This document shows positions 1,026 to 58,137 of a stretch of DNA of 64,000 nt, one piece after another; positions within the stretch are counted from its first letter, which is position 1; each line of letters begins with the position of its first letter. The stretch spans positions 124,001 to 188,000 of IMG/VR virus record IMGVR_UViG_3300027899_000001. One strand, given 5' to 3'. A model generated the notes under the pieces. The model made no database searches, was not told where the DNA came from, and saw nothing but the letters and a program-made list of their open reading frames with translations. The position numbers were made by a program, and so were the translations under genes.

Positions 1026-1517
1026 TTATTCTATAATATACATTTTTACAGAATCTCCAAAGAAATCTGAATGTTCTTTCACGTAATCAAGTATTCTTAA
1101 AAATTTACTTTTATTATTAGGTTTATATGAATCCTCTAATTCAAACTCATATTTTTCTCTACATTTTTTCAACATTTTTACACTTATCCACCATAACTCT
1201 TCTGGATTTTTAGAATTATTTATTATTAAATACTTTGCTTTACTTTGTTCTAAAGAATCGTTTTTATTATTATCTATTACAGTATATGTACTTCCATATT
1301 TTACATCTACAGGAAGTATTAATTTGCCTAAAAACGGTGTTAATTCATCAAATATAAAATAATAATCTATTTTATCATTCATATCTTCTTGCAAAGTTGC
1401 TTCTTCGCTATGAACTATATAACCTCTTTTTCTTAAAAGTTCAATAGCTCTTTTAGCAACTAATGGCTGATTATAAATTCCAAGCTGTTGATCTGCAGTG
1501 CTTCCGTATGTTGACAT
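1026..1517 (-). CDS. Putative PD-(D/E)XK-fold nuclease
   Basis: D..DKIDYY...VDVK pattern. Confidence 0.45.
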   Translation of the reverse strand: MSTYGSTADQQLGIYNQPLVAKRAIELLRKRGYIVHSEEATLQEDMNDKIDYYFIFDELTPFLGKLILPVDVKYGSTYTVIDNNKNDSLEQSKAKYLIINNSKNPEELWWISVKMLKKCREKYEFELEDSYKPNNKSKFLRILDYVKEHSDFFGDSVKMYIIE

Positions 1518-1524
1518 TTTATGT

Positions 1525-1746
1525 TTATTTGTGAGTACTAAATAATTCTTTTAACATTTCCATAGCGCAATTGTTACAAAATAATACCTTTGTCTTTCCT
1601 CTTATTTCGTCCCATGTAAGATTTTCCTTTACAATCACTCTACACTTATGACATAAGATAGCACCACGCCCACCATTGAATTTAATGATAGGCTTTAACT
1701 TTTTCTTAGTTACAGGATCGTATCTTAATTTGGATAACATAAACAT
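1525..1746 (-). CDS. Small Zn-binding hypothetical protein
   Basis: CHKC and CNNC pairs. Confidence 0.6.
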   Translation of the reverse strand: MFMLSKLRYDPVTKKKLKPIIKFNGGRGAILCHKCRVIVKENLTWDEIRGKTKVLFCNNCAMEMLKELFSTHK

Positions 1747-1764
1747 CTAATCTTTATATTATAT

Positions 1765-2304
1765 TTATACGCATAAGTTTTTTCGTTTTATAATTAAATC
1801 TGAAAGTTCTTTTTCAAAATTTGTATTTACTTCTCTTGCCATTGGCAAAACATATTTCTCTGTTTGTTCAAGATACTCTAATATTTTACCAGCAGTATGT
1901 GTATCTAAATGTAAATCAGTAAGGTTACTTATTCTATCTGCACACTTAAGAATTTTTGCATTCTTTGAACCTTTTTCTAACAATCTTTGAAGATATTCTT
2001 CTTTTGTTTCATCTTTAGTTTTTGTAACTTCTAAAACTAAAGTTGCCACTTTATCACCATCACCATCTATGAAACGAATTTCATTAATATTATTATCATT
2101 ATAATCTTCTACAAGATCATGTAATACAGATGCTTTAAGAAGAACTGAGTCATTAAAATATTTATAATCCAATAAAATTCCAAGTGTGGCAAATTGATGT
2201 CTAAATTGATTTCCACCAACTTTACGACTTACACCTATTAATGCCATTGCTTTCATTATATAAGGAGCAAGGACTAAATTTTGTAATGCAAGTAAATTAT
2301 CCAT
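1765..2304 (-). CDS. HD-domain (p)ppGpp hydrolase-like protein (SpoT/Mesh1-type small alarmone hydrolase)
   Basis: H...LHDLVED...LEVTK...KCADRISNL signature. Confidence 0.8.
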   Translation of the reverse strand: MDNLLALQNLVLAPYIMKAMALIGVSRKVGGNQFRHQFATLGILLDYKYFNDSVLLKASVLHDLVEDYNDNNINEIRFIDGDGDKVATLVLEVTKTKDETKEEYLQRLLEKGSKNAKILKCADRISNLTDLHLDTHTAGKILEYLEQTEKYVLPMAREVNTNFEKELSDLIIKRKNLCV

Positions 2305-2325
2305 TTTTTAATATTTAGTATAAGA

Positions 2326-2333
2326 CAAATATA
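2326..2333 (-). promoter_or_regulatory. Bacteroidota-type -7 promoter element TATATTTG
   Basis: Matches TAnnTTTG just upstream of the HD gene; the same element occurs at 4043-4050 (-) and 20835-20842 (+). Confidence 0.55.
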
Positions 2334-2346
2334 ACAACTATTTAAC

Positions 2347-2430
2347 GAATATATAATAAAAGATGGTTAGCTTGCTGAAACAAGCAATGGAAAGGTAAAT
2401 AACCACTGTCCCATCTTTAAATATTTATTC
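2347..2430 (+). ncRNA. Candidate structured 5' leader (three-way junction), copy 1
   Basis: AAAGATGG-TTA-GCTTG(CTGAAA)CAAGC-AA-TGG(12 nt)CCA-CTGTC-CCATCTTT; covaries with 54482-54573. Confidence 0.55.
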
Positions 2431-2454
2431 AATTAAAATAAAAGGTAAAAAATC

Positions 2455-3255
2455 ATGAAAGAATTTAAAAAAACAGAAGATGGGTTTTTCATATGTGAAG
2501 AATGCGAAAAAATATGCGCTGGAAAAATTGGTTTATCTATGCATATAAATAAATATCACAAGTTACAAAATTATTATGATAAATGGCTAAAAGAAGAAAA
2601 TGAAAGTGTTTGTAAAATCTGTGGTGATAAAACTGAATTTATAGGATTATCAAGAGATAATGGATATAAAACTTATTGTTGTAAAGAGTGTGTAGATAAA
2701 GGTAGATATATACAAACGTGTTTAGGAAATGAAAAATTATATGGAGTAAAAAATCCTTATCAGCGTAAAGATATAAAACAAAAAATAAAACAAACTATCA
2801 AAGAACGTTATGGTGATGAAAATTATCGTAATTATAACAAAATAAAAGAAACATGGTTAAAAAAATATGGCGTAGAACATAATATGTATAATAAAGAAAT
2901 TTATGAAAAACAACAGCAAGCGGGGTTTAATGCTAAAACATATAAGTATAACAATATTTTTTATAGAGGCACTTACGAATTTGATTTTTTAGAAAATTTT
3001 TCGTCATTATTTCCAGATATCATAAATTCTATATCAATTAAATATAATTTTGAAGAAAAAGAACATTATTATTTCCCAGACTTCTTTATTCCATCTTTAA
3101 ATCTTATTATTGAAATAAAATCATCATATTTTTATAATAAATTTAAAGATAAATGTAACGTAAAGAAAGCAGCTGCTATTTCCAACGGCTTTAACTATAT
3201 TATGATTATAGATAAAGATTATTCAGAAATAAATTTATTTTTAAAATCTTCGTAA
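2455..3255 (+). CDS. Free-standing homing-endonuclease-like protein (Zn finger, KYGV repeats, C-terminal PD-(D/E)XK)
   Basis: CEEC..H...H; YFPDFFIPSLNLIIEIKS; paralogs at 54597 and 56992. Confidence 0.75.
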   Translation: MKEFKKTEDGFFICEECEKICAGKIGLSMHINKYHKLQNYYDKWLKEENESVCKICGDKTEFIGLSRDNGYKTYCCKECVDKGRYIQTCLGNEKLYGVKNPYQRKDIKQKIKQTIKERYGDENYRNYNKIKETWLKKYGVEHNMYNKEIYEKQQQAGFNAKTYKYNNIFYRGTYEFDFLENFSSLFPDIINSISIKYNFEEKEHYYFPDFFIPSLNLIIEIKSSYFYNKFKDKCNVKKAAAISNGFNYIMIIDKDYSEINLFLKSS

Positions 3256-4022
3256 GTGATAATATCAATATTTTTCTTTTTTGCATTTTTCATTTTACTA
3301 CTTGTTGATGAAAGAGAATCAGTTATAAGATAATTGCAGTTTTTATCTGTTAGTGATACTTCTATAACATTTGAAAATTGTAAAATAAATTCTTCTTTTG
3401 TTTTTGAAATTGGCGAAGGACTTCCTGTCATACAAACTTTTATCGTTCCATTAGGATCATCACCATCTTTTGGTTTATCGATGATAACACCCAATGCTTC
3501 GAGTTCACTTACTGCTTTCTTTATATAGGATACCTTAGACGGTTCTTGAAGCATAGAAACAAGTGCTCTCTCCATACTTGTATAATCTGGAACTAAACCA
3601 CAATATTCTCTTGCAACTTGTTCAGAAAGTTTTCTTCCAACACCATCATATCCCATCATAAGTATTACCTGAGCATATGTAAGAGATTTTATATTTTCAA
3701 ATGCTTCAACAAAAATTTCAAAAGAACGAGAATTATCTTTAATTCCATATTTTTCCATTGAAAATGAACACCTAGTTCTTATTAACTGTAACATATTACG
3801 AACTAATTCATACATGTTATTGAAATCTTCTGCAAAAGGTTCTATAGTTTTTCCACCTATATTTTTAAGATCAAGCATATTAACTGCAGCTCCAAGTTTA
3901 CGAGCTATTACTCCTCCACAATCGGGATTATTACACATTAAATGAATATCATCAAAAGTAAGAGGCTCTCCACATGCAGGACAATATATTGGCATGTATT
4001 TTTGTAATTCTTTATTTATCAT
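3219..4022 (-). CDS. ligA: NAD-dependent DNA ligase, C-terminal part (Zn finger, HhH, BRCT)
   Basis: CPACG..CNNPDC, IGGKT/GVGRK HhH motifs, VCMTGS...SSKMKNA BRCT. Confidence 0.85.
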   Translation of the reverse strand: MINKELQKYMPIYCPACGEPLTFDDIHLMCNNPDCGGVIARKLGAAVNMLDLKNIGGKTIEPFAEDFNNMYELVRNMLQLIRTRCSFSMEKYGIKDNSRSFEIFVEAFENIKSLTYAQVILMMGYDGVGRKLSEQVAREYCGLVPDYTSMERALVSMLQEPSKVSYIKKAVSELEALGVIIDKPKDGDDPNGTIKVCMTGSPSPISKTKEEFILQFSNVIEVSLTDKNCNYLITDSLSSTSSKMKNAKKKNIDIITYEDFKNKFISE

Positions 4023-4089
4023 AATTATTTATTTTTTATATACAAATATAATCATTTTTTATGAAATAGAAAAATATTTAATAGATTAT

Positions 4090-5064
4090 TTACAATATAG
4101 TAAGATTTTTGTTTGAATCAAAAATCCAAAAATTAAAATTGAACCCTTTGTCTAAACATATTTTGCGTTTTACTAAAATTATTTCATTTTTTTTCTTAAA
4201 TGTCCACCAAGATTTAACTTCTATTATTAAATTTTTAGATTTAATAAAAATATCTGGATAATAACTGTGTATTTTATTGTCATGTTCATATTCTATTTTT
4301 CCAAGATGAGTAAATATTTGATGTTTGCCAACTATTATATCATCTTCATTGTATTTTAATAGTAATAAATCTATCGCCCAATCTTCATATCCTTGAATAG
4401 ATACTTGTTTAGAAGAAAAATTATATATTTTATTATTAAATCCTTGTACATACTCTGGAGATTTAGTATGATGATCGTATCCACATTTCTCAATACTATT
4501 TATTTTAATTTTATCTCTTATTTCTTTAATCCATAAATTACTATTTACATCATATCTTTCTTTACATGTTTTTTTTCCTTTTTCCCAATTAGAAAAATAT
4601 TCATCACCATATAATTTTAATTTTGTTTGTTTTGTTTTTTCCTTTATTTGTTTATTTTGAAAAGTGTATTCTGTTCCATATTTTTCTAAACATGTTTGTT
4701 TTGCTTTTTCATTATTATTATATTTTTCATTACCATATTTAAATAATTTAGTAATTTTTGCCTTTTCTATTCTTTTAGCATAATTAGCGTCAAAAATTTT
4801 GCATTTATTAGAACAATATATTCTATATTCTCTATAACTGTTAAATTCTACTAAATGCCCGCAATATTTACATTTAGGTATATCTTTAATATTATTAATA
4901 AGATGATAAAGTCTCTGTACTATTTTTATTTTATAATTATCAATTATTTGATCATCTAAAAATTTAGTATTAGATAAAAGATAAAGATATTCCTTTTTAT
5001 ATTTTTTACAAATTAATTTACTGGGTTTTCCGTAATCGTAAATTTTTTTAAGTTCTTCAAACAT
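4090..5064 (-). CDS. Homing-endonuclease-like protein between the two ligase halves
   Basis: CKYC/YCSNKC, KYG repeats, YYPDIFIKSKNLIIEVKS; GAATATATAAA promoter at 5073-5083. Confidence 0.75.
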   Translation of the reverse strand: MFEELKKIYDYGKPSKLICKKYKKEYLYLLSNTKFLDDQIIDNYKIKIVQRLYHLINNIKDIPKCKYCGHLVEFNSYREYRIYCSNKCKIFDANYAKRIEKAKITKLFKYGNEKYNNNEKAKQTCLEKYGTEYTFQNKQIKEKTKQTKLKLYGDEYFSNWEKGKKTCKERYDVNSNLWIKEIRDKIKINSIEKCGYDHHTKSPEYVQGFNNKIYNFSSKQVSIQGYEDWAIDLLLLKYNEDDIIVGKHQIFTHLGKIEYEHDNKIHSYYPDIFIKSKNLIIEVKSWWTFKKKNEIILVKRKICLDKGFNFNFWIFDSNKNLTIL

Positions 5065-5110
5065 GTTTTTATTTTATATATTCAAAGAAATTTTATAACT
5101 AATGTCCAAA

Positions 5111-6262
5111 CTATTCAGGCGAAAAAATAACTTCTTGAATAGCGGGTATGATATCACCTCGTTTACATAAACTAACTATAGTTCCGGGTTGTATATGATT
5201 TTTGATAATATATCCTGCATTATAGCCCGATGCTCTTTTAACAGTTGTACCGGCTAACTGAACAGGTTTTACTAAAACAACTGGACATAATTCTCCGGTT
5301 TTACCTAAATTCCATTCAATACCTATTACAGTTGTAACAGCTTCTTCTGGCACGAACTTTATCGCAACTGCCCAATTCGGGTCATGTTCATTTTCTCCAA
5401 GAAGTTCTCTATATGCATAATCAAATGAAAATACAACTCCGTCAAGACCTAAATCAAATTGTTCACGAAGTCTTTCATTATTTTTCATTACAGTAATATA
5501 GAGTTGTTCTCTTGGAGGTATTATAGCAGAATATGAAGTTGAAAATATAGGATATTCTTTTACAAGTTTTGTAAAATGTGTTATATCTTCATGATATCCA
5601 TCAATTAAAAAATGAAGAGGAACAAGAGTTATTTCGCTTACCTTTTGAACATCAAAATCATCTTTTCCTATAACTCCTGCAACATAATTACGAGCATTTG
5701 CGAAATCTGCAGCATATTTTTCATTAAAAATCTTTTTACTTATTACTGCCTCACATCTAATTTCTGTAAGAGGTGTAGTGTTGTATTCTGAAAGTTCTTC
5801 ATCATAAAAAAGTTCTGGAAGATATTTCCTAAATCTATCAGTAACATCTTTTCCTGTTTTTCCATCTCCACGAGTAAGAACTGCTTCAAGTTTTGGACCA
5901 CGATATATTATATTAATCGCGCTGCCATCAAATTTAGGAGAATAATGAATGTAAGCACTTTCTCCACCTGCAGCTTTAACTCTGGATTCTCTTTTATTAA
6001 ACCAATCAAAGAATTCCTTTTCCATATAATTGGTTACGCCATCTTTGCTTTCAGTTTGAATTTTTGAAAGAGAACGCATGGGATGTGGATGCGGAAAATC
6101 AAAGTCTTTACGTTTTGATCCTACCTGTTCAATGACTTTAGATCCAGCTTCTTTAAGTTCTTTTTCAAGGACATCAAATGCCGAGTCTGTCATTATTGGA
6201 GTTCCTTCGTAATATGCTATTTTAGCTTTAAGATACTGAGTTTCAAGATTTTGAATATTCAT
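5111..6262 (-). CDS. ligA: NAD-dependent DNA ligase, N-terminal part (adenylation and OB domains)
   Basis: YYEG..D..FD, KFDG, TRGDG..G.DVT, RNY.AG, DGVV, WAVAIKF, RGDIIP. Confidence 0.9.
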   Translation of the reverse strand: MNIQNLETQYLKAKIAYYEGTPIMTDSAFDVLEKELKEAGSKVIEQVGSKRKDFDFPHPHPMRSLSKIQTESKDGVTNYMEKEFFDWFNKRESRVKAAGGESAYIHYSPKFDGSAINIIYRGPKLEAVLTRGDGKTGKDVTDRFRKYLPELFYDEELSEYNTTPLTEIRCEAVISKKIFNEKYAADFANARNYVAGVIGKDDFDVQKVSEITLVPLHFLIDGYHEDITHFTKLVKEYPIFSTSYSAIIPPREQLYITVMKNNERLREQFDLGLDGVVFSFDYAYRELLGENEHDPNWAVAIKFVPEEAVTTVIGIEWNLGKTGELCPVVLVKPVQLAGTTVKRASGYNAGYIIKNHIQPGTIVSLCKRGDIIPAIQEVIFSPE

Positions 6263-50973: not shown

Positions 50974-52164
50974 ATGAAAATAGTACGAGAACATATAAAT
51001 GAAAAATTTTCTGAAGAATCTGATCCTGTACATGATTTAGGCATAGGCATAATACATGCTATTGAAAAATTCTGTGATAAACACAGAAAAGTGATAATGC
51101 CTACTTATGAGTGTGATGAAAAAGATATTATGCTATTAATATGTGTTGATAGAAAAAAGCATGATTATGTAGAAGATTTATTAAAATTAGGAGCTAATGT
51201 ACATACAAGCGCTGGAATACATCTGGGTAATGAAGATCTACCTGTTAGATACGCAATATGGAACAATGATTATGAAATGACAGAATTATTATTAAAATAT
51301 GGAGCATCTATAGAAAACGCATTTGATGAGGATGTTCTTGAACTTATAGAAACTGGAGATTATATGGGTGGAAAAAAAAGTAAAGAATTAATAGACTTAG
51401 TAAAACAACATTTAGAAAAACCAGTAAATGAAAAATTTTCTGAAGAATCAGATCCTATATATGATTTAGGAATAGGAATAATTACAAAACTTAGAAAATT
51501 TTTAAAAGATCATCACTGCGATAATTTTGATTTACGTTATAAACCTGATCAAGATAAAGCTCTTTCTTTATGTGTTAAAACCAATACTCCAGATTTTATA
51601 CAGTATTTAGTATCATTGGGAGCAGACCCTAATTTTAGTCCTGAAGATAAAGATTTTGGGTTATATTTAATGAATGCTGCATACGTAGAAGATTGGGAAG
51701 TTTGTAAAGCTTTAGTTAATAGCGGAGCAGATTTAGATAAAACTATAACATGTTCGATAGATAGACAGACTCCGATAACTTTAAAAAATCTTGAAAGATT
51801 TAAAGAAATGATAGAAAATCCTATAAATGAAAAATTTTCAGAAAAATCAGATCCTATTAAAGATATGGGTATAGGTTTATATACAATAAGAAATTTTGAA
51901 AATTTAAATGAAATAGCAGAATTTATCATATCTATAATGCCATATATTTTAAAAACACATAAAATTCCTGAAGATATTATACATTCTGAGGCTTTTATAC
52001 TAAAACAAAAATATATTAAACCTCTTGATAATTATATTTATAAATATATTAGATTAAATAATGAAGAAATAACATCAGCAATAGATTATAAATTATTTGA
52101 AAATATGTTAAGTATTTTAGCAAAAAGAGGCTTTAAATATCCTAAAACTAAATTCATACATTAA
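50974..52164 (+). CDS. Tag family polyprotein, 3 modules (ankyrin, ankyrin, RxF-class), inverted orientation
   Basis: Three tags; LLKLGANV, LLKYGA, LVSLGADPN. Confidence 0.82.
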   Translation: MKIVREHINEKFSEESDPVHDLGIGIIHAIEKFCDKHRKVIMPTYECDEKDIMLLICVDRKKHDYVEDLLKLGANVHTSAGIHLGNEDLPVRYAIWNNDYEMTELLLKYGASIENAFDEDVLELIETGDYMGGKKSKELIDLVKQHLEKPVNEKFSEESDPIYDLGIGIITKLRKFLKDHHCDNFDLRYKPDQDKALSLCVKTNTPDFIQYLVSLGADPNFSPEDKDFGLYLMNAAYVEDWEVCKALVNSGADLDKTITCSIDRQTPITLKNLERFKEMIENPINEKFSEKSDPIKDMGIGLYTIRNFENLNEIAEFIISIMPYILKTHKIPEDIIHSEAFILKQKYIKPLDNYIYKYIRLNNEEITSAIDYKLFENMLSILAKRGFKYPKTKFIH

Positions 52165-52246: not shown

Positions 52247-52888
52247 CTAGACTAAACACTGAATTTCCTCTTTTTTCAATATAGTTTGTATTACCCAATA
52301 CGCATCTACAAGATCATCTACATGTTCTATCCAATTCCTTCCTCCTTTTTTCATGAAAATTTCTCGTTTTTCAAACAATTTTAAACGAAACTTACAATGA
52401 GGTGGTCCTGAACGAATAAATTCGTCGATCATCTCAGATTTTCCCATTCCTTTTTTTGCACAACCAGCTATACTTTTAATTGTAATAGGAGAATAAGTAT
52501 ACATATGATCTAATGAAACATATTGGGAAAGTTCATTCATCAATATATATTTGTAACCACCTAATTGTATTCCAGAATCTCCTCCCGATCCATAAGATAA
52601 CCCTTCAAATGCGAGATAGGTATCTCCATTAAAGTAACACTTAAGTGATTCAGTGATAAGATTTGAAAGGTATCTTGCGTTTTCTACTTCCCAACGCATT
52701 TTGGAAGTTAATCCTAATTCATGTTCTTTATTATCTATACGATCAATTATAGTTATACCAGATTCTCTAAAAGTTTTAATAGATTTGTCAGAAATTGAAT
52801 ATGGCCAACTCATAAAAGAATATTTGCCATTTGAAAAGATGCATGCCGCTGGTTTATTTATTGAAAAATCGAATCCAATTATATTCAT
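52247..52888 (-). CDS. RuvC-like Holliday junction resolvase
   Basis: IIGFDFS, FEG, SP.TIK, DDLVDAYW. Confidence 0.75.
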   Translation of the reverse strand: MNIIGFDFSINKPAACIFSNGKYSFMSWPYSISDKSIKTFRESGITIIDRIDNKEHELGLTSKMRWEVENARYLSNLITESLKCYFNGDTYLAFEGLSYGSGGDSGIQLGGYKYILMNELSQYVSLDHMYTYSPITIKSIAGCAKKGMGKSEMIDEFIRSGPPHCKFRLKLFEKREIFMKKGGRNWIEHVDDLVDAYWVIQTILKKEEIQCLV

Positions 52889-53667
52889 TTATCTTTAAGT
52901 GTTAATGCGTGAAAATCATGATAGTCAGGATAATGATAAGTAAGTATGTTAACTAATCTTACTGCACATTTTTTACGTATATCTTCAAATGTAAAATCAG
53001 GAATAATATCAGTATAAATAGTTAAAGTTCCTCCTACATAATCAGGCAAATATTTTAATTGGTTTTTAGTTTTAAATACACAAGAAAATTGTCCTGTTAT
53101 TTTTCCAAATTTAATATAAGACGGCAAGTTAGTATTTTCTAAAGAAGAAAAATTTACATATTCTGCATTTATCTTTAAATCTTTACTTATATTTTCGCCT
53201 TTAATAAAACCACGTTTTCTTAATTCTGTTACAAAGGAATCAATTTTTTGCCTAATGCCTATACCCATATCATGAATAGGATCAGAATCTTCTGTAAAGG
53301 CTTCATTTAATGGATCTACATTGATATAAAAATGTTCTTTAAGAACTTCTGCAACTATTTTTCTAGCTTTTAACATATCTTTTTTTGTGTCATTTATATG
53401 AGAAAATGCTCGGCATGAATTATTGAAAGCAATTTGAACTGGTATATTTCTAATAGCATCTGAAATAGTAAATGACGCTATAGCAGCATATTTATGTTTA
53501 TAATAAAAAGAATATTTAGAAAAAAATTTTTCTACAAACTCTTCGGGATTTTTATTTATTTTTTCATTTTCAATTTTCCAAAAATTTATTAAACCTATTC
53601 CCAAATCTTTTATTGGATCGCTTTCTTCTGTGAAAATTTCGTTTATATGTTCTCTAACTAATCTCAT
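52885..53667 (-). CDS. Tag family polyprotein, 2 modules
   Basis: INEIFTEESDPIKDLGIG; LNEAFTEDSDPIHDMGIG. Confidence 0.8.
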   Translation of the reverse strand: MRLVREHINEIFTEESDPIKDLGIGLINFWKIENEKINKNPEEFVEKFFSKYSFYYKHKYAAIASFTISDAIRNIPVQIAFNNSCRAFSHINDTKKDMLKARKIVAEVLKEHFYINVDPLNEAFTEDSDPIHDMGIGIRQKIDSFVTELRKRGFIKGENISKDLKINAEYVNFSSLENTNLPSYIKFGKITGQFSCVFKTKNQLKYLPDYVGGTLTIYTDIIPDFTFEDIRKKCAVRLVNILTYHYPDYHDFHALTLKDK

Positions 53668-54481: not shown

Positions 54482-54573
54482 GATATATAAAATATAGTAG
54501 TTAGATTAATGTTTCAGCATTAATCAACATTCGGATAGAATAAAATGCTGTCCTACTATAATCTATATATTTT
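54482..54573 (+). ncRNA. Candidate structured 5' leader (three-way junction), copy 2
   Basis: TATAGTAG-TTA-GATTAATG(TTTCAG)CATTAATC-AA-CATT(12 nt)AATG-CTGTC-CTACTATA. Confidence 0.55.
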
Positions 54574-54596
54574 AATTAAAATAAAGGATAGAAATA

Positions 54597-55538
54597 ATGA
54601 AAGAATTTAGAAAAACAAAAGATGACCTTTTTATATGTGAAGAATGTGAACGAACATTTGCATCTTATCAAGGTTTACGAAATCATATTAGGCATTCACA
54701 TAAACTAATATCTCAAAAAATATATTATGATATTTACAGAAAAGAAGAGAACGAAGATAAATGTAAAATTTGTAATAATGATGCGCCTTTTATATCATTA
54801 TTTTATGGATACAAACCTGGGTGTTGTAAAAAACATATAAATTTATATTCCTATAAAAAGAAATCTCAAAAAATGAAAATTAAATATGGAATAGAAAATC
54901 AATTTCAAAGAGCTGATATAAAAGAAAAAATGAAAATAACAAATATTAAAAAATTAAATGTAGAATATCCTTCACAATCAAAAGAAGTAGTATTAAAAAT
55001 CAAAAAAACAAAGAAAGAAAAATATAATGATGAAAATTATAATAATACTGAAAAACGAAATAAAACTACACAAAATAAGTATGGATATAGTACTGTATTA
55101 AAAGACAAACAAAAAATGAAAATTTCTATACTTAATAAATATAATGTAGAAAATGTTATGCAATGTCCTGAAATTTATAAAAAACAACAAATGTCTGGCT
55201 TTTTATCTAATAATTATAGAAATACTGATATTTATTATAGAGGGTCATATGAATTAGATTTCTTAGAAACATTTTATGATAAATATCCTGATATTATTAA
55301 TGGGCCTGTAATTAAATATAAATTTAAAGGAAAAAATAGAATATACTTTCCAGATTTTTACATACCTTCTTTAAATCTTATAATTGAGATAAAAAGTTTG
55401 TATTATTATAATAAATATAAAGATAAGTGTTACGTAAAAGAACGCGCAGTAATTAATAACGGTTATAGCTATAGTTTAATTTTAAATAAAAATTATAAAA
55501 ATTTTAACGAGCGAGAGCATAGCCCATTGCAGCAGTAA
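54597..55538 (+). CDS. Homing-endonuclease-like protein (Zn finger plus PD-(D/E)XK)
   Basis: Paralog of 2455..3255; YFPDFYIPSLNLIIEIKS. Confidence 0.75.
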   Translation: MKEFRKTKDDLFICEECERTFASYQGLRNHIRHSHKLISQKIYYDIYRKEENEDKCKICNNDAPFISLFYGYKPGCCKKHINLYSYKKKSQKMKIKYGIENQFQRADIKEKMKITNIKKLNVEYPSQSKEVVLKIKKTKKEKYNDENYNNTEKRNKTTQNKYGYSTVLKDKQKMKISILNKYNVENVMQCPEIYKKQQMSGFLSNNYRNTDIYYRGSYELDFLETFYDKYPDIINGPVIKYKFKGKNRIYFPDFYIPSLNLIIEIKSLYYYNKYKDKCYVKERAVINNGYSYSLILNKNYKNFNEREHSPLQQ

Positions 55539-55830
55539 CAAGACGACTTGTCATTAATTTTCCTAATACTCCTGTTTCTTCTATTCCAAGAACTTTACAA
55601 ATAGCTTTTCCAATTGCTGGACCAGCAAGAGCGCCAACACCGGCTCCTAATAAACCTGTGAAAATTCCTTCGTCTATTTCTTCGCCCTTTTCAAGTTTAT
55701 CTACAATAAGATTATAAGTTCTTTCAGCTTCTTGAATTTGAGTAGCAGTTAATCCTTTAATATCTTCAGATTCAAATATCTTTGAAGTTGTTGAATATTT
55801 TAAATCGTTATATGTCGGAAATTTTTCCAT
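55504..55830 (-). CDS. Small protein with glycine-zipper hydrophobic C-terminal half
   Basis: EIDE|GIFTGLLGAGVGALAGPAIG; putative late promoter at 55846-55856. Confidence 0.65.
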   Translation of the reverse strand: MEKFPTYNDLKYSTTSKIFESEDIKGLTATQIQEAERTYNLIVDKLEKGEEIDEGIFTGLLGAGVGALAGPAIGKAICKVLGIEETGVLGKLMTSRLVTAAMGYALAR

Positions 55831-56357
55831 GATAATATATTTTTATTTATATATTCTTTATTTAGCGTCCATATAATTGTTTTTTTAATGCTATTTGTTT
55901 TTTTTAATTCTTTTTGTAATTGTTTTATTTTATCTGATAAATATCTTTCACTTCCATAACGTATTATGTCTAATTCTCTAATTATTGGTTTTAAATTATT
56001 TGGAAGAGAATAAAGTGGACCCGCAGTATCATCAGCCTGAGATATTACAAACCAACCTATTTCTGGTTTTAAATTAGTTAATGAATGTTCTGCTATTATG
56101 TCTTCTGCTGCTTCAACAGATTCTGCGAAATAAATATCTATGTCTTCAAAATCAGAATCCCAACAAGTTATATAGTAAATATCATTAGAATCTCCTGATG
56201 TCATAGATATTTTATCATAATCAAATTCTGTATCATATCTTTTATCAATTATATGTATAAATTGTTCTATAATTTCTTCGGGTTTAATACCAATGCCCAT
56301 ATCTTTGATAGGATCTGATTCTTCTTTAAATTTTTCAGTTATATATTGTGCTTTCAT
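55800..56357 (-). CDS. Tag family, 1 module
   Basis: ITEKFKEESDPIKDMGIG. Confidence 0.8.
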   Translation of the reverse strand: MKAQYITEKFKEESDPIKDMGIGIKPEEIIEQFIHIIDKRYDTEFDYDKISMTSGDSNDIYYITCWDSDFEDIDIYFAESVEAAEDIIAEHSLTNLKPEIGWFVISQADDTAGPLYSLPNNLKPIIRELDIIRYGSERYLSDKIKQLQKELKKTNSIKKTIIWTLNKEYINKNILSWKNFRHITI

Positions 56358-56941
56358 AGATCATTACTTGATATTCCTGCGGTACTCATCGAATTATCTA
56401 ATCTTCGACTTATTTTATATCTATTGTATGTTAGATTTAATGTAAATGTATTAAAATCGGCAGCATTCGTTGCATAGCTTATATTAAATTGAGATAACGC
56501 GTTAGGAACTATTTTTTGAAATTCAAATGCAAGTAATTCAAATCCATGATGATCGAGAAAACTAATATACATTGATGGCCAGAAAGGATTTGTTTCATAA
56601 TATTGTTGAAAATATTCTATTTGTTCAAATAACATCCAATATGTAATAAATCCTTCAGTTAATTTAAAAGTTACTGTAATATTTTTATCAAGTATAGGTT
56701 CAAGTTCTTTTCCTCCACGATATTTAATTTGAAACATTGTTTGTGGTTGTATAGCTCCACCTAAAATAACTTCAGGAAATGTAACAGCTTGAACAGATGC
56801 ATTAAAAAAATCTTCAAGAGATTGATATTGTAATTTTAATCGTTTAACAACAGGAGTCCATCTTTCTCTTATTTCTGGATAAAAGAAATCTTTAGGAAAC
56901 CATATACTAAATTGATTTAGCTTACTATTAAGTATTGACAT
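56354..56941 (-). CDS. Putative tail tube/tail-completion-fold protein
   Basis: VQAVTFP, ITVTFKLTE, FTLNLTY beta pattern like T4 gp3/gp19. Confidence 0.45.
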   Translation of the reverse strand: MSILNSKLNQFSIWFPKDFFYPEIRERWTPVVKRLKLQYQSLEDFFNASVQAVTFPEVILGGAIQPQTMFQIKYRGGKELEPILDKNITVTFKLTEGFITYWMLFEQIEYFQQYYETNPFWPSMYISFLDHHGFELLAFEFQKIVPNALSQFNISYATNAADFNTFTLNLTYNRYKISRRLDNSMSTAGISSNDL

Positions 56942-56991
56942 TTTAAAACTTTTTTAATATATATCTATATAATACTATAATCTATATATTT

Positions 56992-58137
56992 ATGAAGAAT
57001 CCGATTAAAAATCAAAACAACGAATTTATATGTGAAGAATGTAATAAAACATATATCAAATTAGATGGATTATCCAAACATATTGGTGTTATTCATCAAA
57101 ATAAAAAAGAATATTACGACAAATATCTAAAAGAAGAAAATGAAGATATTTGTCCCATATGTGGAAATAAAAATCCATATTTAAATAGATGGGACAGAGG
57201 ATATAAGAAAACCTGTTCAATAAAATGTGCTAATATATTAAGACATCAATTACAAGCAAACACACTATTAAAAAAATTTGGTGTAGAAAATGTTATGCAA
57301 ATAAAAGAAGTTAGAGAAAAATATGAAAATACATGTTTTGAAAAATATGGTGTTAAAAATGCTATAGAAAATAAAGATGTTAGAGAAAAATCAAAACAAA
57401 CTTGTTTAAAACATTTTGGAGTTGAAAATCCATTGCAATCATTAGAAATACAGACACGAGGAAGAAAAACAATGAAAGAAAAATATGGAGCCGAATATAC
57501 TTGGCAATCTGAATCCCTTATGAATAAAGTTAAAGAAATAAATATAAAAAAATATGGGGTTGAGTGCCCTTCTCAAAACGAAAAAATAAAAGAAAAAATT
57601 AAAAAAACAACAAAGGAAACCACAGGATATGAATATAATTTTCAAAATAAAGAATTAATGATAAATTCTATGTTAAATAAATATGGTGTTGAAAATATAT
57701 CTCAATTAGAAGAAACACAAAATAAAATAATAAAAACAAATCTAGAAAAATATGGAGTTACTCACCATTTTCAAAACAAAGAGATTTTTTTAAATGCTCA
57801 GAAAAAAGCATTTAAAGTGTTTCAATTTAAAAATACAAATATTTGGTATCAAGGTTCTTATGAATTAGATTTTATTAATAAATATTATGATAAATTTCCA
57901 GATATACAAAGAGGCCCATCAATTCCATATAAATTAAATAATAAAAATAGAATATATCATGCTGATTTTTTTATTCCATCATTAAATTTAGTTATCGAAT
58001 GTAAAAGTAGTTATTATTATAAAAGATTTAAAAAACAAGATATTGCAAAGAAAAAAGCCACTATTTCTAATGGCTTCAAATATATTATGATAACTAATAA
58101 AAAATATAATAAATTCATTAAATTATATTGCGCTTAA
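56992..58137 (+). CDS. Homing-endonuclease-like protein (Zn finger, many KYGVEN repeats, PD-(D/E)XK)
   Basis: Paralog of 2455 and 54597; YHADFFIPSLNLVIECKS. Confidence 0.75.
   Translation: MKNPIKNQNNEFICEECNKTYIKLDGLSKHIGVIHQNKKEYYDKYLKEENEDICPICGNKNPYLNRWDRGYKKTCSIKCANILRHQLQANTLLKKFGVENVMQIKEVREKYENTCFEKYGVKNAIENKDVREKSKQTCLKHFGVENPLQSLEIQTRGRKTMKEKYGAEYTWQSESLMNKVKEINIKKYGVECPSQNEKIKEKIKKTTKETTGYEYNFQNKELMINSMLNKYGVENISQLEETQNKIIKTNLEKYGVTHHFQNKEIFLNAQKKAFKVFQFKNTNIWYQGSYELDFINKYYDKFPDIQRGPSIPYKLNNKNRIYHADFFIPSLNLVIECKSSYYYKRFKKQDIAKKKATISNGFKYIMITNKKYNKFIKLYCA

Follow-up and report, generated by a model that had tools for sequence, protein, structure and literature searches.

A covarying three-stem element precedes homing-endonuclease genes of huge freshwater phages and carries a loop copy of the bases before the start codon

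This study investigated a small three-stem structure lying between a promoter-like box and the start codon of selfish nuclease genes in a group of huge freshwater phages. The structure is strongly covarying, and in all 26 copies analyzed, one of its loops repeats the few bases located just before the start codon of the nuclease. These findings tentatively point to a previously undescribed brake on these genes, possibly mediated by an antisense RNA. The analyzed window was a 64,000-nt stretch comprising positions 124001-188000 of the virus record IMGVR_UViG_3300027899_000001. This record is 405,016 bp long, has direct terminal repeats and a G+C content of 28.8%, and is rated complete. Its only distant DNA relatives among deposited phages are huge uncultured phages, and the only public run listed as holding it is a freshwater DNA metagenome, with no RNA run listed.

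We first examined the two copies in the window (Table 1). The initial annotation had described a covarying three-way junction upstream of two related endonuclease genes, and this observation was confirmed; sequence and coordinates were as described, and both copies fold as drawn. Both regions fold better than dinucleotide shuffles on either strand, with z-scores from -2.7 to -4.5. However, three details required correction. The junctions, described as invariant (TTA, AA, CTGTC), are nearly but not strictly so, because J1 is TTA, TAA, or TGA, J2 is AA or AG, and J3 is CTGTC, GTGTC, or ATGTC. The loop lengths, described as fixed at 6 and 12 nt, vary from 3 to 9 nt in P2 and from about 6 to 14 nt in P3. 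Finally, the element is not tied to one nuclease family.

Table 1. Features of the two copies of the element in the window, with the supporting observations
Copy	Feature	Position	Strand	Observations
1	Phage promoter-like box GAATATATAA in front of the structure	2347-2356	+	55 exact copies in the genome, nearly all 5-30 nt upstream of an ATG; PWM score 13.3 bits against a true-site median of 16.4
1	Three-way junction: P1 2359-2366/2411-2418; J1 TTA 2367-2369; P2 2370-2374/2381-2385, loop of 6 nt; J2 AA 2386-2387; P3 2388-2390/2403-2405, 12-nt loop at 2391-2402; J3 CTGTC 2406-2410	2359-2418	.	62.6 bits, E 3e-15
1	P3-loop copy of the pre-ATG motif AAAGGTAAA	2391-2399	+	9-nt identity with 2441-2449; reverse complement of the loop predicted to pair with the translation-start region at -8.5 kcal/mol
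1	Inverted promoter-like box (reads GAATAAATAT on the minus strand), pointing into the structure	2421-2430	-	GAATAAATA(T) variant itself enriched 7-11 fold upstream of genes in this genome; promoter function inferred
1	Conserved TTAAAATAA leader motif	2433-2441	+	Present 11-13 nt before the ATG in six of the seven genome copies and in most others (variants CTAAAATAA, TAAAAATAA)
1	Pre-ATG copy of the loop motif (AAAGGTAAA), the proposed pairing target	2441-2449	+	GG-containing site, atypical for this phage
1	Homing-endonuclease gene (C2H2 zinc finger plus DUF7487, PD-(D/E)xK-like)	2455-3255	+	PF24308, E 1.3e-21; PHROG endonuclease and homing-endonuclease families
2	Promoter-like box AGATATATAA	54481-54490	+	15.9 bits
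2	Three-way junction: P1 54493-54500/54553-54560; J1 54501-54503; P2 54504-54511/54518-54525; J2 54526-54527; P3 54528-54531/54544-54547; J3 54548-54552	54493-54560	.	70.8 bits, E 1e-17
2	P3-loop copy of the pre-ATG motif GGATAGAA	54533-54540	+	Antisense loop against the start region, predicted -11.1 kcal/mol
2	Inverted promoter-like box (reads AAATATATAG on the minus strand)	54563-54572	-	7.8 bits, above the 99th percentile of random windows; function inferred
2	Conserved TTAAAATAA leader motif	54576-54584	+	
2	Pre-ATG copy of the loop motif (GGATAGAA), the proposed pairing target	54586-54593	+	
2	Homing-endonuclease gene (C2H2 zinc finger plus DUF7487)	54597-55538	+	PF24308, E 6.5e-24; weak C2H2 matches below the curated cut-off

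To investigate how widely the element occurs, we scanned the whole genome for the structure, which immediately revealed further copies outside the window, and then built a covariance model from 22 copies. The model identified seven copies in the genome, all on the plus strand (E 1e-17 to 1e-6), and about 30 further copies in loci retrieved by pattern scans of IMG/VR and of metagenome contigs. Together with a descriptor-based search, these scans yielded at least about 40 distinct copies on about 30 metagenomic phage contigs; the family is certainly larger than sampled, because the metagenome scan and one viral scan covered only part of their matches. The metagenome pattern scan returned mostly chance matches and added only three new copies. 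A BLAST search against cultured phages revealed no homolog. Several copies come from closely related phages, so the number of copies overstates the number of independent events, and parallel changes were therefore counted by lineage.

The covariation was assessed on a 30-sequence model alignment. The results revealed that 92.3% of cells are paired, compared with 64.8% in shuffles, and that 18 of 20 pairs show changes on both sides, with 156 cells carrying double changes against 46 expected. The covariation score was 0.659 against 0.178, a value reached by 0 of 500 shuffles, and it collapsed when the 3' partners were slid by 1 to 3 columns. Chance is therefore excluded. P1 is selected for pairing over 7-8 bp and no further, and the junction bases are nearly invariant (G/U[U,A,G]A, A[A,G], and [C,G,A]UGUC/C), whereas the P2 loop and the 3' part of the P3 loop drift freely. 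No curated Rfam family, including HEARO/omega-RNA, riboswitch three-way junctions, and tracrRNA, matched at gathering thresholds over the 64-kb window, and the best hits at permissive thresholds scored 12-20 bits against family thresholds of 35-77 bits. ARAGORN identified no tRNA or tmRNA gene in the window, and a tRNA-like reading was rejected. Literature searches found no description of this element. These findings indicate a real, undescribed family.

We then examined the sequence context. The box in front of the element is the general promoter motif of this phage, about TGAATATATAAAATAAA, as identified by motif enrichment only. The exact form GAATATATAA is enriched 18.6-fold in the 60 nt upstream of ORFs, and the ATG usually lies 5-19 nt after the box. 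Ordinary genes thus have very short, A-rich leaders; only 10.5% of the 449 ORFs have a GG at -18 to -4, and 4.7% have a Shine-Dalgarno core, which is less than in random sequence. Ordinary terminators are GC-rich hairpins with U runs placed just before the next box.

Every copy of the element precedes a homing-endonuclease-type gene. Pfam and PHROG searches assigned these genes to three unrelated families, namely C2H2 zinc finger plus DUF7487 (PD-(D/E)xK-like), HNH plus NUMOD3, and GIY-YIG (SegE-like) plus NUMOD3; a few copies, left out of this assignment, precede ORFs with other N-termini. Identical leaders precede different families in one phage, in which the copy labeled L011 precedes a GIY-YIG gene and the copy labeled L044 precedes an HNH gene. 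The genome of the window has about 30 such nuclease genes, 7 of them with the element, and the others sit directly behind a box with no leader structure.

The most informative feature, which the initial annotation missed, is that the P3 loop contains the same sequence, in the same sense, as the 6-11 nt that end 3-5 nt before the ATG. All 26 copies analyzed showed a same-sense identity of 5-11 nt between the P3 loop and the 18 nt before the ATG, with a mean of 7.7 nt for cognate pairs and 4.9 nt for non-cognate pairs. The motif differs between lineages and changes in parallel at both places in at least 10 independent lineages, for example AAAGGTAAA/AAAGGTGAA, GGATAGA/GGGTAGA/GGATAAG, AGAGGGA/AGAGAGA, GATTTGGA/AGTTTGGA, AAGGACGT/AAGGACT, AAGGTTAA/AAGGTTTAA, and ACGGTTA/ACTGTTA; the motifs AGAGTTAA and ATCGGT were also found. 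The pre-ATG site is G-rich in a genome whose leaders avoid G. All 7 element-bearing nuclease genes have a GG there, compared with 3 of 23 other nuclease genes in the same genome (p = 6e-5). The site therefore appears to be a dedicated operator that comes and goes with the junction rather than an ordinary ribosome-binding site.

To explain why two same-sense copies remain identical, we searched for a common complementary partner. No general complement of the motif was found on the plus strand of the cassette, whether in the leader, the P2 loop, or P1; the invariant J3 CUGUCC pairs only with GGAUAG-type motifs and cannot explain the covariation. The partner cannot lie in the ORF or the upstream flank, because these are exchanged between copies. 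By contrast, the minus-strand version of the junction automatically displays the exact complement of the operator in its P3' loop. The predicted duplexes between this antisense loop and the start region, covering positions -13 to -4, averaged -10.6 kcal/mol for cognate pairs, -5.1 for non-cognate pairs, and -4.8 +/- 2.3 for shuffled loops.

Several further features hint that the minus strand matters. Isolated non-Watson-Crick pairs in the stems are A·C on the plus strand, which is G·U on the minus strand, in 8 cases against 0. On the model alignment, the count was 13 against 5 overall and 7 against 0 outside the uncertain apical end of P2 (p about 0.016), although this asymmetry rests on few events, several of them at helix ends. 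Where loop and operator differ by a substitution (copies c6 and L034, only two events), the loop has A and the operator has G, and a minus-strand U could still pair with that G. The minus-strand minimum-energy fold reproduces one uniform architecture in most copies (P1, GAC, P3' extended by G·U and A-U, P2' directly abutting, UWA), whereas the plus strand often prefers alternative pairings. Total fold energies did not clearly favor the minus strand, which was more stable in 15 of 26 copies (p = 0.18).

An inverted promoter-like box lies 0-4 nt beyond P1 on the downstream side, at the same spacing as the upstream box. It is exactly GAATATATAA in several copies and a near match in most. With the TATATAA-anchored matrix, 17 of 26 inverted boxes scored above the 99th percentile of random windows, and the remainder are of the GAATAAATAT type, which is itself a box variant found before genes 7-11 times more often than expected. 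The inverted box is clearly weaker than the upstream one; with a broader EM-derived matrix, too diffuse to be a sharp test, only 6 of 31 exceeded the random 99th percentile, compared with 24 of 31 upstream boxes. We also considered whether the flanking boxes extend P1 into a long palindrome or P0 helix, but pairing beyond position 8 was at the level expected from base composition, so this was rejected and the downstream box is a motif in its own right.

The orientation of the cassettes is also biased. Of 30 cassettes with known flanks, 25 lie antisense to both neighbors (6 of 7 in this genome and 19 of 23 on other contigs), and within the genome, nuclease genes without the element show this arrangement in only 5 of 21 cases (p = 0.007). 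The 3' ends overlap the convergent right-hand gene. Minus-strand transcription across the cassette is therefore expected even without a dedicated promoter.

On the basis of these findings, we tentatively propose that the element is the core of a portable expression-control cassette carried by free-standing homing-endonuclease genes in a clade of huge, AT-rich freshwater phages. The cassette comprises the phage promoter box, a 55-68 nt three-way junction, the inverted promoter-like box, TTAAAATAA, the short G-rich site, and the ATG. In this view, the plus box makes the nuclease mRNA with the junction as its 5' leader, and the minus strand of the junction is made as a small RNA of about 70-90 nt, which would either start at the inverted box or arise from read-through of the surrounding minus-strand genes. 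This RNA would fold as P1-GAC-P3'-P2'-UWA-P1', end in a U-rich tail, and present the complement of the G-rich site in its P3' loop. The loop would pair with the nuclease mRNA 4-13 nt upstream of the AUG and could also kiss the identical loop in the mRNA leader, thereby limiting translation or stability of the mRNA. The analysis itself establishes the structure, its covariation, its exclusive link to these genes, the loop/site covariation, and the atypical nature of the site, whereas transcription of the minus strand, the pairing, and a repressive outcome are inferred from sequence alone. Moreover, the stems are almost entirely Watson-Crick, so the plus-strand leader folds as well, and if the mRNA leader and the small RNA overlap fully, an extra target at the start codon is not strictly needed.

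The interpretation in the initial annotation was partly supported. It proposed an undescribed element linked to mobile nuclease genes, lacking a hammerhead core and more complex than the T4-type hairpins, and these points held. However, it offered a cis-regulatory RNA, a ribozyme, a nuclease-associated RNA, and a structured DNA end without discriminating between them, and it missed the loop/site duplication, the atypical nature of the G-rich site, the inverted box, the sharing of one leader by three nuclease families, and the antisense placement. These features point to a sense/antisense RNA mechanism acting at least partly through the opposite strand, rather than to a purely cis-acting leader, a ribozyme, or a family-specific nuclease partner.

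Homing endonucleases are the main selfish genes of large phages, and how they are kept harmless to their carrier is known in detail only for T4 relatives, in which simple hairpins do the job. In the T4 family (I-TevI, I-TevII, I-TevIII, segB, Aeh1 mobE), homing-endonuclease genes with their own promoter are translationally restrained by an RNA structure just upstream (PMC2988022). The present element differs from these hairpins in that the pre-ATG site is not sequestered but duplicated in a loop of a covarying junction with conserved junction bases; the site lies 20-30 nt 3' of P1 and is unpaired in copy 1 and only weakly paired in copy 2 in the minimum-energy folds. In addition, the T4-type hairpins have a promoter placed inside the hairpin, so that late transcripts lack its 5' half, whereas here the plus-strand box lies upstream of the whole structure and no good plus-sense box lies between the structure and the ATG, with a mean of 5.2 bits and 1 of 31 above the random 99th percentile.

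The proposed logic resembles that of IS10 RNA-OUT/RNA-IN and other cis-encoded antisense controls of mobile-element genes, as well as that of type I toxin-antitoxin pairs such as hok/sok, and of P1 c4/ant, and would extend the theme of tight translational control of phage homing endonucleases. In IS10, a transposase-type gene is restrained by a small structured RNA whose exposed loop is complementary to the translation-start region, and the promoters face each other so that the 5' regions overlap. In the present case, a structured element was found whose loop, read on the antisense strand, is complementary to the start region and covaries with it, but the putative regulator would be a three-way junction instead of a single hairpin, the target lies outside the overlap as a second, separately maintained copy of the loop sequence, and the cargo is a homing endonuclease from any of three families. 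An antisense RNA connected to a free-standing homing-endonuclease gene, CfrI, has been reported in cyanophage S-PM2 (Millard et al. 2010, as summarized in PMC12197685). CfrI is encoded between psbA and the endonuclease gene, has no described three-way junction or loop/start-site duplication, and is not a family shared among nuclease types.

The results point to a different, modular solution shared by three nuclease families across many uncultured huge phages. Its covariation signature, a loop equal to the start-site operator, is unusual for any bacterial or phage riboregulator and provides a built-in, testable specificity code. If the antisense reading holds, this would be the first dedicated small-RNA family controlling homing-endonuclease genes and a natural set of orthogonal loop/operator pairs. 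The analysis also defines the general promoter motif of this phage group and shows that its genes are essentially free of Shine-Dalgarno sequences.

The strongest alternative, although doubtful, is a purely cis-acting plus-strand leader, which is the default expectation for a 5' UTR structure. In this reading, the junction presents a mimic of its own translation-start site, and a factor that binds the real site is captured or shared; such a factor could be a dimeric RNA-binding repressor bridging two identical sites, as CsrA does with GGA motifs, or the 30S subunit, with the mimic as a decoy or standby site. The conserved J3 CUGUCC might also act as a local anti-site pairing alternately with the loop or the start site. 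The element lies directly behind a strong promoter box in all copies and is certainly in the mRNA if that box fires; many loops contain GGA or GGAU with a second copy at the start site, and GGAUAG-type loops pair with J3 CUGUCC in the plus-strand minimum-energy folds. Nevertheless, a protein or ribosome of fixed specificity, or the invariant J3, cannot explain why loop and site covary outside GGA, as in GATTTGGA/AGTTTGGA and AAGGACGT/AAGGACT, or why some copies have no GGA at all (AAAGGTAAA, AGAGTTAA, ACTGTTA, ATCGGT) and some motifs no GG. The avoidance of Shine-Dalgarno-like sequences argues against a ribosome decoy, and no plus-strand G·U pairs were found among the isolated stem mismatches or outside the apical end of P2.

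A more far-reaching reading, unlikely but not excluded, is that the junction is a new class of programmable RNA module traveling with homing-endonuclease genes of three unrelated folds, its 12-nt loop written to match a dedicated operator at the gene's own start codon. The sense leader and the antisense small RNA would then form a two-site switch (loop-loop and loop-operator) setting when, or in which co-infecting genome, the nuclease is made; in the most exotic version, the RNA would itself be catalytic or work with the nuclease.

It is also unlikely that the element is a transcriptional insulator, namely a branched, bidirectional terminator flanked by two outward- or inward-facing promoters that stops read-through between the antisense-inserted gene and its neighbors, or a structured DNA element, with the loop/site identity being secondary. 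P1 is A-rich on one side and U-rich on the other in both orientations, the minus-strand P1 is followed by UUUUAUUAU-type tracts, the nearly constant antisense placement with 3' overlap fits this reading, and the almost purely Watson-Crick stems are as expected if both strands or the DNA matter. However, the structure is branched and AT-rich, unlike the simple GC-rich terminators of this phage; a consensus terminator scan found none at 1500-4200, and in one copy (c5), a canonical terminator follows the element anyway. A terminator or DNA cruciform needs neither invariant junction bases nor a loop matched to the start site, and a DNA-level role predicts no A·C versus G·T asymmetry.

A new self-cleaving ribozyme, or a guide-like RNA working with the encoded nucleases through the 12-nt loop, is very unlikely, though not excluded by computation: although about 11 nearly invariant junction nucleotides (G/UWA, AA, NUGUC/C) around three variable stems resemble small ribozymes in general and the association with nuclease genes is exclusive, no ribozyme family matched even at E up to 10, the junction strands of 3, 2, and 5 nt (UWA, AA, NUGUC) do not fit the hammerhead core (CUGANGA, GAA, and UH), one loop is programmed by the leader of the downstream gene, the sharing of one leader by three unrelated nuclease folds makes a specific protein partner unlikely, and HNH, GIY-YIG, and PD-(D/E)xK homing enzymes are protein-guided.

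Other readings were rejected. A leader peptide starting at the J3 NUG or at the AUG in P3 was not supported, because frames and lengths are not conserved, and translational bypass of the T4 gene 60 type was excluded by the absence of an upstream ORF. A comparison with empty sites to define the cassette ends yielded none, because the neighboring genes have no relatives in the related 316-kb phage, and a ligase query identified only the genome of the window. A target-site duplication or MITE insertion between the two repeats was incompatible with P1 spanning the first repeat.

On the minus strand of the window, an NAD-dependent DNA ligase appears to be split into two ORFs, with a DUF7487 homing-endonuclease gene sitting between the N-terminal and C-terminal parts on the same strand. 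This nuclease gene lies directly behind a promoter box and is not preceded by the three-way junction. In the genome as a whole, about 30 homing-endonuclease-type genes (DUF7487 with zinc finger, HNH, and GIY-YIG) were identified within 405 kb, which is an unusually heavy load of selfish nuclease genes.

Two further nuclease genes were preceded by sequences that resemble incomplete forms of the element. Upstream of one DUF7487 nuclease gene in the window, the 3' half of P1 (ACTATA) and the ATCTATATATTT flank of the copy-2 type were present, whereas the junction core, the TTAAAATAA motif, and the G-rich operator were missing; this region looks like a decayed copy of the element. Outside the window, a GIY-YIG gene was preceded by a box plus AAAGTAG-TAA-GTTTT, which corresponds to P1a, J1, and the start of P2 of the element fused straight onto the ATG, and this arrangement looks like another truncated derivative. 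At two loci of the same 316-kb phage record (L011 and L044), identical box, junction, and leader sequences up to the ATG were joined to a GIY-YIG gene in one place and to an HNH gene in the other. This finding indicates that the leader and the nuclease ORF are exchanged as separate modules.

We also considered an alternative pairing on the plus strand, on which the P3 loops of the GGAUAG type are complementary to the invariant J3 plus the first P1 base (CUGUCC). The minimum-energy fold often preferred this predicted pairing to P3, and the pairing could represent a tertiary contact or an alternative state, or it could be incidental.

Analysis of the whole genome revealed one dominant promoter-like motif, TGAATATATAAAATAAA, which lies 5-19 nt before most starts and is often preceded directly by a GC-rich hairpin with a U run. 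The genes are almost free of Shine-Dalgarno sequences. These findings suggest a host with SD-independent initiation, such as Bacteroidota, although this assignment is our own inference from sequence features alone. In addition, a multi-copy protein family was observed in the window and at a further locus (L001), the members of which start with a conserved N-terminal motif of the form ...(N/H)EKF(S/T)E(E/D)SDP(I/V).D(M/L)GIG, sometimes repeated within one protein.

Coordinates of the additional features in the window, elsewhere in the genome, and at other loci
Feature	Sequence	Position	Strand
Apparently split NAD-dependent DNA ligase, whole region	window	3219-6262	-
Ligase, N-terminal part	window	5111-6262	-
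Ligase, C-terminal part	window	3219-4022	-
DUF7487 homing-endonuclease gene between the ligase parts	window	4090-5064	-
Putative decayed copy of the element	window	56940-56991	
DUF7487 nuclease gene downstream of the putative decayed copy	window	56992-58137	
GIY-YIG gene (g356) with putative truncated derivative of the element	genome, outside the window	339943	
Multi-copy protein family member	window	50974-52164	+
Multi-copy protein family member	window	52885-53667	-
Multi-copy protein family member	window	55800-56357	-
Multi-copy protein family member	L001	2276-2674	
Identical box, junction, and leader, joined to a GIY-YIG gene	L011 (316-kb phage record)	1763-1827	
Identical box, junction, and leader, joined to an HNH gene	L044 (same 316-kb phage record)	2613-2677	
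P3 loop and J3 with predicted alternative pairing (and equivalents in other copies)	window	54533-54552	+
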